Shown here piece by piece: positions 10,136-37,398 of a stretch of 64,000 bases of DNA (within the stretch, counting starts at the first letter, position 1; every line of letters begins with the position of its first letter). Source of the DNA: Phyllobates terribilis (taxonomy: Eukaryota); NCBI RefSeq assembly GCF_046119375.1, contig NW_027362761.1, forward strand, positions 542,810,001 to 542,874,000, written 5' to 3'. A program made the translations under genes and the position numbers. The notes under the pieces are model-generated. The model was not told the origin of the DNA. It ran no database searches and saw only the letters and a program-made list of their open reading frames with translations.

Positions 10136-10144
10136 ATATCCTTT
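10136..10144 (+). other. U12-type (AT-AC) 5' splice site ATATCCTTT
   Basis: Exact match to the minor-spliceosome donor consensus RTATCCTTT, at the point where hinderin similarity stops. Confidence 0.92.
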
Positions 10145-10949
10145 TTGTCTTCATATATTTACTCCCCCCACACCCGCCGGTTCTCTTTCTCACTCTGCTC
10201 TGAGTTATAATTGTACTAATTTATGGAGAGGAATAAATCTGCATGTGTTTCCATTCAGTAGCATGACTTATCAGCATGGGATGCTGCCTGCGTTGGGCTG
10301 GAAGCGGCTTTCCAGCTGTTCCCTCCATGCTTCCCTTCTATGAAATCTACATTTGTCAACATGAATTTCCCATTCCCGCCTGCTGAACAGGAACACTTTC
10401 CATAAGGATAGCGGCCTCAGAATCGCTCTGCATTGCCTCGTTTTAATCAGATTCTCGGGTACGTTCACATAACGCCCCGCAGGCTGCCAAGTGTTAATCT
10501 GATTAACTCTTACTCGGCAGGTCCGTAGCCCAGCACAGCAGCGGCCGGCCCGCGGCTCTCTGGGCACTTTATAGCAGCTATTACGGCTGACCGTGACCTG
10601 TGAATGTATTACTGTAAATCACAGGACACTTTACCGGGAAGCCAAGGCTTCTAGGCATGTCCTGAGTGTTTAGTCGACCGTGGACTCGCCTGAACTGTGC
10701 TGGTTCTGATCAACACTCTAAATGGTTGGTCCTATTTGTTAATTGGCCTCATCTATTTTTCTTTTTTCTCGTAATGATCATCTATATAGTAATAGAGAAG
10801 TGGGGAACCTTTCTTTGTATTTCCATCACCCATTCTGTGTTTTATTTTCTGTGTATACACAACGCTAGACTTCGAGTCAACACCTATTGACTATCCTATG
10901 AGTCAACATTGACCCTTTTAAATCGCCTTGCTACATGATATAAAATGAT

Positions 10950-11045
10950 ACGCCACTTGCACAAAGCTGTTTCGGGCTTCTTGCTCCTCATCAGTGCAAT
11001 CTAGGAGACTGTTGGGTTTGGTCGGAGGCCTGAGTAGTCACAAAG
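10950..11045 (-). ncRNA. Degenerate minimal hammerhead-ribozyme-like motif, probable Penelope-like element remnant
   Basis: Minus strand reads TTGCA CTGATGA GGAGC AAGAA GCCC GAAAC AGCT TTG TGCAA: core boxes plus plausible stems I and II, but the cleavage triplet is not NUH. Confidence 0.5.
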
Positions 11046-11135
11046 TGTTAACTATTCACAATCTTTAAAGCCGATGTCTCATTAAAGTGTCCTGTTAAAA
11101 CAAATGGGCCTATGTACGAGGTAGGTGATAACTCG

Positions 11136-11400
11136 TTGATCGGTGGGGGTCCGATGGCTGTGACCCGCAACGGTCGGCAGAATAGGGTACTTTTCATTCC
11201 TGTTATAACGGAGCTGCAGTGCACTTGCTTGACCACCGCTCCACTAATTACCTATGGGGCTGCATAGAGAATAAGTGGAGAGGCTGTCGGGCATGCGATC
11301 TGCTGCTGACGTTTGTAAAGTGATCAGTAGGGGATAAAATTCCTAGTTCTGCTGATCGGTGCAGGTCCCAACGGTTGGACACCCAGTGATCAGTATCTGG
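11136..11400. mobile_element. Degenerate fold-back MITE remnant
   Basis: Imperfect inverted arms TGATCGGTGGGGGTCC...GGCAGAATAGG and CCTAGTTCTGCTGATCGG...CAGTGATCAG. Confidence 0.45.
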
Positions 11401-11999
11401 TGGACAGATTCCGCCTCTTATGGCATATAGCTGATTATTGGTTATGGTGGGGGGCAACAGAGTAAATATACTATTATTGATAAATGATCCTTCAAGTAAT
11501 ACAAAGATGGCACAAGTCTGCCAGATCAGGGGCTGCTGTTACTTCTCTGATGGGAGCCCTGGTGGGATCTGTACTTATCGGAGCCGCATATATGCAGTAG
11601 TATCTATGGACTAAATTGTATATGCTTTCTCCGTAATGTAAATCCTAAAATGCCAGTGATCCGTTAACCGCTTAATAGCTAATTGAAATAACGAAGGATA
11701 GTTTTCAGTAGAATTTTCTATCAGTGGTAGTGGTAGTGGTGGTAGTAGTAGTTTATTACATACTAAAATAATAATCATAATACAAAATAACCAACACTAA
11801 CAATACAAATAATAAATATTAATACATATTAACACTAATACTAATTAATAACACTATCATACTTGTTATTATGAATTAGTGTTATTAATCAGCATTTTAG
11901 TATTTGTATTAATGTATTCATATTAGTGATGTTTAGTTAATAATATTATTCCGTGTTAATTTGCCCAAAAATGACAAAAGTATTCTGTGTGATACATTT

Positions 12000-34178: not shown

Positions 34179-34682
34179 GGCTATGTTCACACATGTTGGG
34201 TTCTTCAGCGTTTTTTGCTGCAGATTTTTATGCAAATTTTCAGCTGCATTTTGCAGTACGAGCAAAGTCTGAGAACCCAGAATTCTCTGTTCACACATCA
34301 TAGTTTTTTTTTTTTTTTGTTCAGGATTTTGTGCCTTGATTGTGTTTTTGGAAAATAGAGCATGTCACTTCTTTCAGCGTTTTTTCAATGTTTTTTCACC
34401 CATAGGAAGTAATGGGTGGTGAAGAAAACCCTGGAAAAACGTATCAAAAATGCACCAAAATTTGCATCAGTTTTTTTCAGCATTTTTGATGGCAAAATAG
34501 AATGGGGTTCTTGTTTTTTTTTTGTTTTGTTTTTTTCACAGCACTTTATGTACATGCATAAATAGAGACAGAAGGACAGTGAAAAAAAATGCAATAAAAC
34601 CTGCGGTTTTAACGCAGCTGATTTCCTGCCAGAGATTAGGTTTTCTTGCAGATTTGTGACGCTGAAAAACCCAACGTGACAT
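34179..34682. mobile_element. Harbinger-like MITE inserted in the 38-bp array; right TIR eroded
   Basis: TAA|GGCTATGTTCACAC, identical to the 4199 terminus; the array resumes at TTACCGTCACGC. Confidence 0.7.
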
Positions 34683-34959
34683 TACCGTCACGCACTTGGT
34701 GCGGCAGCAGGGGGCGCCCGTACCATCACACACGTAGTATTTCCCTATCTTAATTTATTAAATGAGGCAACAGTGAGGTTGCTCTCTTGCTGTGTCTAGT
34801 TGCGGCTGTAGTATGGCTGACTGTCCTGTAATAAACACGGTGCAGCACTAGGGGGCGCTGCTGAAATTATTTCTTTGTTGTTTTTCTTGGCCCTATCCGT
34901 ACTTATTTTTGAAAGAAGCTGCAATGAGCCTGACTCCAGCGGTCCAGGCATAGTAGAGA

Positions 34960-37225
34960 CTGTGACGTGGCTGCTTCTTCTGTAATGGCCATGGTGCAGC
35001 TCTGGGCGGCGCTGCTGCAGAATAGAGGCTGTGATGTGGCTGCTTCTCCTGTAATAACCATGGTGCAGCTCTGGGGGGCGCTGCTGCAGAATAGAGGCTG
35101 TGCTGTGGCTGCTTCTCCTGTAATGGCCATGGTGCAGCTCTGGGTGGCGCTGCTGCAGAATAGAGGCTGTGCTGTGGCTGCTTCTCCTGTAATAACCATG
35201 GTGGCGCTCTGGGGGGCGCTGCTGCAGAATAGAGGCTGTGATGTGGCTGCTTCTCCTGTAATAACCATGGTGCAGCTCTGGGGGGCGCTGCTGCAGAATA
35301 GAGGCTGTGCTGTGGCTGCTTCTCCTGTAATGGCCATGGTGCAGCTCTGGGTGGCGCTGCTGCAGAATAGAGGCTGTGATGTGGCTGCTTCTCCTGTAAT
35401 AACCATGGTGGCGCTCTGGGGGGCGCTGCTGCAGAATAGAGGCTGTGATGTGGCTGCTTCTTCTGTAATGGCCATGGTGCAGCTCTGGGGGCGCTGCTGC
35501 AGAATAGAGGCTGTGATGTGGCTGCTTCTCCTGTAATGGCCATGGTGCAGCTCTGGGGGGCGCTGCTGCAGAATAGAGGCTGTGATGTGGCTGCTTCTCC
35601 TGTAATGGCCATGGTGCAGCTCTGGGGGGCGCTGCTGCAGAATAGAGGCTGTGATGTGGCTGCTTCTCCTGTAATGGCCATGGTGCAGCTCTGGGGGGTG
35701 CTGCTGCAGAATAGAGGCTGTGATGTGGCTGCTTCTCCTGTAATGGCCATGGTGCAGCTCTGGGGGGCGCTGCTGCAGAATAGAGGCTGTGCTGTGGCTG
35801 CTTCTCCTGTAATGGCCATGGTGCAGCTCTGGGGGGCGCTGCTGCAGAATAGAGGCTGTGATGTGGCTGCTTCTCCTGTAATGGCCATGGTGCAGCTCTG
35901 GGGGGCGCTGCTGCAGAATAGAGGCTGTGATGTGGCTGCTTCTCCTGTAATGGCCATGGTGCAGCTCTGGGGGGCGCTGCTGCAGAATAGAGACTGTGAT
36001 GTGGCTGCTTCTCCTGTAATGGCCATGGTGCAGCTCTGGGGGGCGCTGCTGCAGAATAGAGGATGTGATGTGGCTGCTTCTCCTGTAATGGCCATGATGC
36101 AGCTCTGGGGGGCGCTGCTGCAGAATAGAGGCTGTGATGTGGCTGCTTCTCCTGTAATGGCCATGGTGCAGCTCTGGGGGGCGCTGCTGCAGAATAGAGG
36201 CTGTGATGTGGCTGCTTCTCCTGTAATGGCCATGGTGCAGCTCTGGGGGGCGCTGCTGCAGAATAGAGGCTGTGATGTGGCTGCTTCTCCTGTAATGGCC
36301 ATGGTGCAGCTCTGGGGGGCGCTGCTGCAGAATAGAGGCTGTGATGTGGCTGCTTCTCCTGTAATGGCCATGGTGCAGCTCTGGGGGGCGCTGCTGCAGA
36401 ATAGAGGCTGTGATGTGGCTGCTTCTCCTGTAATGGCCATGGTGCAGCTCTGGGGGGTGCTGCTGCAGAATGGAGGCTGTGATGTGGCTGCTTCTCCTGT
36501 AAAGGCCATGGTGCAGCTCTGGGGGGCGCTGCTGCAGAATAGAGGCTGTGACGTGGCTGCTTCTCCTGTAATAGCCATGGTGCAGCTCTGGGGGGCGCTG
36601 CTGCAGAATAGAGGCTGTGACGTGGCTGCTTCTCCTGTAAAGGCCATGGTGCAGCTCTGGGGGGCGCTGCTGCAGAATAGAGACTGTGACGTGGCTGCTT
36701 CTCCTGTAATAGCCATGGTGCAGCTCTGGGGGGCGCTGCTGCAGAATAGAGACTGTCATGTGGCTGCTTCTCCTGTAATGGCCATGGTGCAGCTCTGGGG
36801 GGCGCTGCTGCAGAATAGAGGCTGTGATGTGGCTGCTTCTCCTGTAATGGCCATGGTGCAGCTCTGGGGGGCGCTGCTGCAGAATAGAGACTGTGACGTG
36901 GCTGCTTCTCCTGTAATAGCCATGGTGCAGCTCTGGGGGGCGCTGCTGCAGAATAGAGGCTGTGATGTGGCTGCTTCTCCTGTAAAGGCCATGGTGCAGC
37001 TCTGGGGGGCGCTGCTGCAGAATAGAGGCTGTGATGTGGCTGCTTCTCCTGTAATGGCCATGGTGCAGCTCTGGGGGGCGCTGCTGCAGAATAGAGGCTG
37101 TGATGTGGCTGCTTCTCCTGTAAAGGCCATGGTGCAGCTCTGGGGGGCGCTGCTGCAGAATAGAGGCTGTGATGTGGCTGCTTCTCCTGTAATGGCCATG
37201 GTGCAGCTCTGGGGGGCGCTGCTGC
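34960..37225. repeat. 69-bp satellite, about 33 copies
   Basis: GTGATGTGGCTGCTTCTCCTGTAATGGCCATGGTGCAGCTCTGGGGGGCGCTGCTGCAGAATAGAGGCT; 23-aa periodic ORFs in several frames. Confidence 0.95.
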
Positions 37226-37377
37226 ACAGCCTGTTAGTGTGACATTTTGCAGCATTTTTCCCCTTGTCTGTTACGCTATGAGAGCTGAAATCTCCGCTCT
37301 GCTGCCTCCGGGCCGTGTTGTCACTCTTGACATGAAAGATTTTACTTTTGTTTTTATTTTTCCTAAAGTTTAAGAAA

Positions 37378-37398
37378 TCCCTTAACGAATCTTTGCAC
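37378..37398 (+). other. U12 branch site TCCCTTAAC (branch A about 37385) and AC 3' splice site
   Basis: Matches TTCCTTRAC consensus, 13 nt from the terminal AC, with no polypyrimidine tract in between, as typical of U12 introns. Confidence 0.9.

Follow-up and report, generated by a model that had tools for sequence, protein, structure and literature searches.

An AT-AC intron with U12-type splice signals in the hinderin gene (KIAA1328) of Phyllobates terribilis, at a position shared among jawed vertebrates

Introduction

Textbook U12-type AT-AC introns, such as intron F of NOP2/P120 and those of the sodium-channel genes, are characterized by a /ATATCCTT 5′ splice site, a TCCTTAAC branch site 10–15 nt from the 3′ end, the absence of a polypyrimidine tract and U2-type neighbours. 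The intron described here lies in the hinderin gene (KIAA1328) at positions 10136–37398 of a 64,000-nt stretch of the genome of the frog Phyllobates terribilis (RefSeq assembly GCF_046119375.1, contig NW_027362761.1, positions 542,810,001–542,874,000 of the forward strand; hereafter the window). It shares these traits and exhibits no difference in kind from the textbook examples, although the base preceding its CCTTAAC is C rather than T.

Hinderin is an SMC3-binding coiled-coil protein whose human gene spans ∼400 kb and contains 10 exons (PMC547899). MIDB Table S1 lists two minor introns for human KIAA1328 (chr18:36829197-36834319, 5,123 nt, and chr18:36885673-36959307, 73,635 nt), which begin 91 nt and ∼56.6 kb into the transcript, and two for mouse AW554918 (5,600 nt, and 85,962 nt at chr18:25203977-25289938); Table S2 gives one KIAA1328 minor intron with the 5′ site ACT/GTATCCTTT, and for both species Table S7 records alternative splicing at the large KIAA1328/AW554918 minor intron (Olthof et al. 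2019, PMC6717393). A KIAA1328 3′ splice-site record of U12DBv2 is reused in supplementary file 6 of PMC10853781. An earlier note on this DNA, which could not tell whether the intron was already catalogued in orthologues, had proposed such a look-up, and the gene is indeed present in both MIDB (two minor introns) and U12DBv2. It appears in supplementary tables only: no main-text discussion of a KIAA1328 minor intron was found in the full-text literature, and no KIAA1328 entry in the readable supplement text of the intronIC/IAOD, intron-taxonomy and Mendelian-disorder papers.

Results and discussion

U12-type signals at the ends of the coding match

Our reading, to which we give a probability of about 0.95, is that 10136–37398 is an ancient phase-1 U12-type AT-AC intron between two coiled-coil hinderin/KIAA1328 exons, with a counterpart catalogued in human and mouse. 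The features that bear on it are as follows.

10020–10135, + strand: upstream hinderin coding exon, 116 nt (Pfam PF15369 positions 21–57, E 5.5e-15; 93% identity to Anomaloglossus hinderin; RNA contigs)
10136–37398, + strand: AT-AC U12-type intron, phase 1 (RNA junction 10135/37399; position shared in shark, teleosts and tetrapods)
10136–10144, + strand: U12-type 5′ splice site ATATCCTTT (window sequence)
37379–37386, + strand: cCCTTAAC, a branch-point box of U12 type (its branch A, 37385, is 13 nt before the last intron base, 37398)
37397–37398, + strand: terminal AC (..GCAC; sequence and RNA junction)
37399–37526, + strand: downstream hinderin coding exon, 128 nt (PF15369 positions 59–100, E 9.5e-16; RNA contigs)

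The upstream exon stops with ...GGGAAG at 10135 (...GAGAGGGAAG) and the intron opens with ATATCCTTTTTG at 10136, the dinucleotide at 10136–10137 being AT; GT is not present there, just as the earlier note had observed. At the 3′ boundary, the intron closes with ...TCTTTGCAC (in longer form, ...AAATCCCTTAACGAATCTTTGCAC) at 37398 and the exon opens with CTCTACAACAGCAG at 37399. The assembled intron comprises 27,263 letters, 324 of which are N, and this length and both boundaries (10135/10136 and 37398/37399) agree to the base with those claimed in the note. With splice-site strength judged by identical or near-identical MIDB-scored 12-mers, the donor 12-mer AAGATATCCTTT is identical to that of documented minor introns in human and mouse (e.g. 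ZDHHC18), whose 5′ splice sites have MIDB scores of 94.6–99.2.

On the + strand of the window, ATATCCTT occurs twice and CCTTRAY 13 times, and from base frequencies we estimate the chance of both boxes falling precisely at the two points between which the protein match is interrupted at ∼1e-9 to 1e-10. Thus, the presence of both U12 boxes at the exact boundaries of the coding match is a pattern that does not reflect chance. The second ATATCCTT, at 19891, was rejected as a decoy donor, as it lies in a non-coding repeat context with no exon in front.

Joining 10135 to 37399 keeps the reading frame, with EREALQQQY read across the junction, and both other frames give stops or nonsense. The exons match PF15369 (KIAA1328) with 56.3 and 58.8 bits (Pfam gathering cut-off 27), and as the profile is matched at 21–57 and then at 59–100, the split codon alone falls between them. 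When 1.84 billion representatives were scanned with HMMER, the 42-amino-acid exon as query returned 68 matches; among the 20 that were looked up by name are proteins called ‘protein hinderin’ or KIAA1328, in species ranging from shark to mammals, as well as several short fragment models. The closest named match is hinderin of the frog Anomaloglossus baeobatrachus, with 93% (upstream exon) and 80% (downstream exon) identity, which points to an anuran-like genome. Across the junction, hinderin orthologues of a frog, a marsupial, a lizard, a salamander and teleosts have ERE(A/G/S)L(Q/R/H)QQY with no added residues (one salamander isoform has L-Q-R-Q-Y there), and that of elephant shark reads EREALQQQY. 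The in-frame join and the identity of the gene, both put forward in the note, are therefore well founded, the Pfam match being contiguous and the best matches being annotated as hinderin. No hinderin exons other than 10020–10135 and 37399–37526 were found in the window.

The flanking splice sites are of U2 type, with an acceptor ..ctcgttccag/G directly before 10020 and a strong donor CAG/GTGAGC at 37527 after the 128-nt exon, which is where the note had placed them (acceptor 10019, donor 37527); the pigeon, rodent and shark likewise have GT(A/G)AG at this donor. According to established U12 biology, the 5′ site ATATCCTTT would be paired first by U11 and later by U6atac, and U12 would pair with CCTTAAC, bulging out the branch adenosine, 13 nt ahead of the terminal AC; this distance would fix the AC, and removal of the intron would join GAAG to CTCTACAA. 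Exon definition between the U12 sites and the flanking U2 sites is plausible: the 116-nt exon has an ordinary U2 acceptor, and the donor of the 128-nt exon is a strong CAG/GTGAGC. Cross-talk between the minor and major spliceosomes around minor introns is described in a preprint (bioRxiv 10.1101/2020.05.18.101246).

From these motifs we infer that the hinderin intron would depend on the minor spliceosome. Terminal dinucleotides alone do not set the spliceosome class, and a rare class of AT-AC introns is excised by the major (U2-type) spliceosome; the hinderin intron might be one of these. U2-type AT-AC introns, however, are without the ATATCCTT box and the CCTTAAC box at 10–15 nt, both of which are present here and conserved from shark to mammals. 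A polypyrimidine tract is also absent between the branch site and the 3′ end, which argues against U2-type removal, and the orthologues are entered as minor introns in MIDB and U12DB. Excision by the major spliceosome is thus extremely unlikely.

RNA contigs across the junction

RNA from four runs (X1–X4) of one study on the same organism provided one assembled contig per run (575, 2305, 2306 and 1609 nt, respectively). In all four, 10018–10135 is followed at the next contig letter by 37399–37529 with zero mismatches (contig positions 228–345/346–476 in X1, 243–360/361–491 in X2 and X3, and 1141–1258/1010–1140 on the minus strand in X4), and the 30 unaligned contig letters ahead of 37399, AGAACAACCTCATTGCTACAGAGAGGGAAG, are the end of the upstream exon. 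The 5′ box, the branch box at its proper distance, the terminal AC with an open frame and the RNA junction expected of a U12-type AT-AC intron are thus all present, and splicing occurs at exactly the bases that the note had proposed for such an intron.

The extra aligned bases at 10018–10019 (AG) and 37527–37529 (GTG) are coincidental matches to the neighbouring exon ends, and they fit a U2 acceptor of phase 2 at 10019/10020 together with a GT donor at 37527. Past 37529, the contigs run on as CCTAAAACCCCAAGACGG..., which codes for VPKTPRRPTSN (VPKTPRRPTAS in Anomaloglossus hinderin). A search of the window did not find this next exon, so that the intron before it exceeds 26 kb.

Two faint intronic contigs of depth 2, at 10235–10385 (X4) and 37192–37339 (X1), contrast with an exon depth of 18–71; they are compatible with a little unspliced precursor and are too weak for interpretation. 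Read-through past 10135 would add 23 residues before a stop, and an AATAAA is located at 10232–10237. The 151-nt X4 contig is the sole RNA seen in 10136–10385; because it extends ∼150 nt beyond the AATAAA, it has the appearance of unspliced precursor and not of a polyadenylated end.

The alternative-splicing events that MIDB Table S7 reports at the large KIAA1328/AW554918 minor intron, together with the extent of our RNA comparison (9 kb of the window), leave some room for an additional alternative exon within the intron or a gap, in which case 10136–37398 would be two introns in some isoforms. We consider this very unlikely, as each of the four RNA assemblies passes straight from one exon to the other, the orthologous protein isoforms examined have no extra residues at the join, and RNA depth is zero over 10400–11990 and 36000–37110.

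Conservation of position and a subtype switch in teleosts

In the elephant shark Callorhinchus milii, an AT-AC intron of 4,842 nt (L003:21107–25948) interrupts the shared codon as GAAG/ATATCCTTTT...TTTCTTGACTCATTTTGCAC/CC. It has the same position and phase as the frog intron, the same GAAG/ATATCCTTT donor and, 12 nt ahead of its terminal AC, a TTCTTGAC branch box, but measures 4.8 kb as against 27 kb in the frog, and only the splice signals are alignable.

For Xenopus laevis, Columba guinea and the rodent Scotinomys teguina, the comparison covers the acceptor side of the intron. The 3′ end is TTCCCTTAACATCAGATGTTAC/ in Xenopus and TTTCCTTAACTTCTGATGTCTCAC/ in the pigeon, both with terminal AC, and TTTCCTTAACTTGCAATCTCAC/ in the rodent, where TTTCCTTAAC...CAC/ precedes the orthologous exon; in all three species (T/C)CCTTAAC lies 12–14 nt ahead of the terminal AC. 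When the 200 nt upstream of the exon are aligned for frog, Xenopus, pigeon, rodent and shark, conservation is confined to the branch box and the terminal (C/T)AC.

The teleost introns occupy the same codon and phase and retain the U12-type boxes, with GTATCCTT at the 5′ site and CCTTGAC (Clupea) or TCCTTAAC (Brienomyrus) at the branch site, whereas their ends are GT-AG. Intron 3 of Clupea harengus (L001:3047–12286, 9,240 nt) reads GAAG/GTATCCTTTT...CCCTTGAC...GAG/, and that of Brienomyrus brachyistius (L002:2319–6740, 4,422 nt) reads CAAA/GTATCCTTC...TCTCCTTAACTTGCTCTCCAG/; both are U12-type GT-AG introns, of 9.2 and 4.4 kb, that differ from the frog intron by a subtype switch inside the U12 class. 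Subtype switching is a known fate of U12 introns. The simplest history would be that the intron was AT-AC in the jawed-vertebrate ancestor, was kept as such in cartilaginous fish and tetrapods and switched to GT-AG in teleosts. The hinderin intron would then cleanly illustrate how shark and tetrapods have retained an AT-AC intron for >400 million years while teleosts switched it to GT-AG inside the U12 class.

Counterparts in human and mouse

Hinderin intron 1 starts with GTATCCTT in herring (L001:558–1474), Brienomyrus (L002:558–1326) and elephant shark (L003 near 860–887), after ...W-I-(N/R)-D-T. The MIDB 5′ site ACT/GTATCCTTT fits this intron, and the match of the intron-1 starts to the MIDB site indicates that the hinderin gene has two conserved U12-type introns, the first of which is outside the window. 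As the U12 introns of herring hinderin are introns 1 and 3, we infer from gene layout and the rodent acceptor that the second, very long catalogue entries (human, 73,635 nt; mouse, 85,962 nt) are the counterparts of 10136–37398. In agreement with this, exon 1 of the human and mouse genes is directly followed by a U12 intron, and two exons further on comes another one, which is very long; the frog intron differs in being shorter (27 kb).

Several points weigh against our reading. The human and mouse match is drawn from gene layout (herring introns 1 and 3) and the rodent acceptor, and the AT-AC subtype of the catalogued human and mouse entries is presumed. The dependence on U11, U12 and U6atac is deduced from motifs, and the RNA support takes the form of contigs assembled from the four runs of a single study. 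Finally, the length of the intron is uncertain, as it contains two gaps of estimated size, and its internal order is likewise uncertain. The hinderin AT-AC intron is nonetheless real and ordinary and, by the layout argument, already known for the human and mouse orthologues. It raises no new mechanistic question.

Length and content of the intron

The interior of the intron contains the following gaps and tandem arrays, for which no strand is assigned.

12000–12175: assembly gap, adjoining the terminal-inverted-repeat element 12176–13716
15459–15606: assembly gap (N run)
29865–30507: tandem array, 38-nt unit, 17 copies
31012–31809: tandem array, 43-nt unit, 18.6 copies
34954–37226: 69-nt satellite, 33 copies with units 96–99% identical; the largest intronic array (2.3 kb), stopping 172 nt short of the 3′ splice site

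The earlier note had called the intron unusually long, and this part of it does not stand. No upstream exon is found within 33.8 kb before the acceptor in Columba guinea or within 36 kb in Scotinomys, and with >33 kb in pigeon, >36 kb in rodent and 74/86 kb in the inferred human/mouse counterparts, 27 kb is not unusual; the next intron of the same frog gene is itself >26 kb. Hinderin genes span 336 kb in Anomaloglossus and 249 kb in Anolis, and the mean length of U12 introns rises with the size of the genome (PMC7367187). The length of the hinderin intron would reflect the expansion of satellites and transposons in a genome that is large, and not a special property.

The description of the intron as packed with transposons and satellites holds in part. 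Tandem arrays account for ∼5.3 kb, or ∼19% of the intron, and at least one terminal-inverted-repeat element is present (12176–13716), which has a 177-nt inverted-repeat arm next to the gap and, judged by eye, looks like a Tc1-like transposon; none of the ten intronic open reading frames of at least 95 amino acids, however, has a Pfam transposon domain. A 182-nt intronic fragment (16788–16969) is 73% similar to part of a reverse-transcriptase reading frame at 726–2393.

The two gaps are the only N runs in the window, and both are wholly intronic. They conceal no coding exon, because the Pfam profile is contiguous, the orthologous proteins are uninterrupted and RNA joins 10135 to 37399, and the frame is independent of them. 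Their sizes are estimated, one adjoins a transposon inverted repeat, and tandem arrays such as those listed here, including the 2.3-kb array of near-identical units, are often collapsed by assemblers. It may therefore be that the 27-kb distance is an assembly artefact, with 12176–15458 or everything between the gaps and the satellites misplaced or collapsed and the true intron longer, shorter or rearranged. This we regard as unlikely, though with a real chance of being right. Against it, the two exons share a strand, follow each other in the correct order and are joined in RNA, and tens of kilobases is the expected size of the hinderin intron in tetrapods; the splice sites would in any case be unaffected.

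A regulatory role of this length is a further idea. With a satellite 172 nt from its 3′ site, the 27-kb intron could be a rate-limiting and regulated step in hinderin expression, spliced slowly through cross-exon U2 contacts and possibly giving read-through or truncated isoforms. Were this so, the depth-2 contigs beside both splice sites would be retained pre-mRNA and not noise, but we find it quite unlikely.

Consequences for gene annotation

Hinderin must be annotated with an AT-AC intron, or else it is split or truncated, and the public models of four species exhibit this failure. In Columba guinea (P0002, L005) and Xenopus laevis (P0031, L004), fragment models start in the 3′ end of the intron, translate the branch box and go on into the exon; the stretch ...FSLTSDVSP/LQQQY of P0002 is the translation of TTCTCCTTAACT...CAC/CT. 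In Scotinomys teguina (P0010, L006) and Pleurodeles waltl (P0008), they begin at or just before the exon and are without all that lies upstream, and Pleurodeles hinderin is divided into at least two models (P0008/P0084). The fragments carry the public label ‘hypothetical protein’. The warning in the note that annotators restricted to GT-AG would miss or mis-join these exons is thus realized in broken models of all four species.

Neighbouring features

The window contains several further elements outside the AT-AC intron. The reading frame at 726–2393 (- strand) encodes 555 amino acids with an RVT_1 domain (E 7.5e-36) and is probably a retroelement in the upstream hinderin intron. An 86–92-nt tandem satellite at 6929–7383 and 8998–9800 is interrupted by a Tc1/Sleeping-Beauty-like transposon (7382–9010), which has 141-nt inverted repeats and an open reading frame (7740–8267) with HTH_Tnp_Tc3_2 and HTH_SB domains. 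Summed RNA contig depth over the satellite and transposon (6929–9800) ranges from 10^3 to nearly 3x10^5, and that of the neighbouring hinderin-exon bin is 11–42. In the intron after the 128-nt exon, a near-perfect palindrome at 48643–49552 consists of two 445-nt arms that are 97% complementary and 20 nt apart, flanked by ∼420-nt direct repeats (47252–47667 and 49689–50105), and is possibly a foldback-type element. A 51-nt tandem repeat of ∼8 copies occupies 63148–63555.

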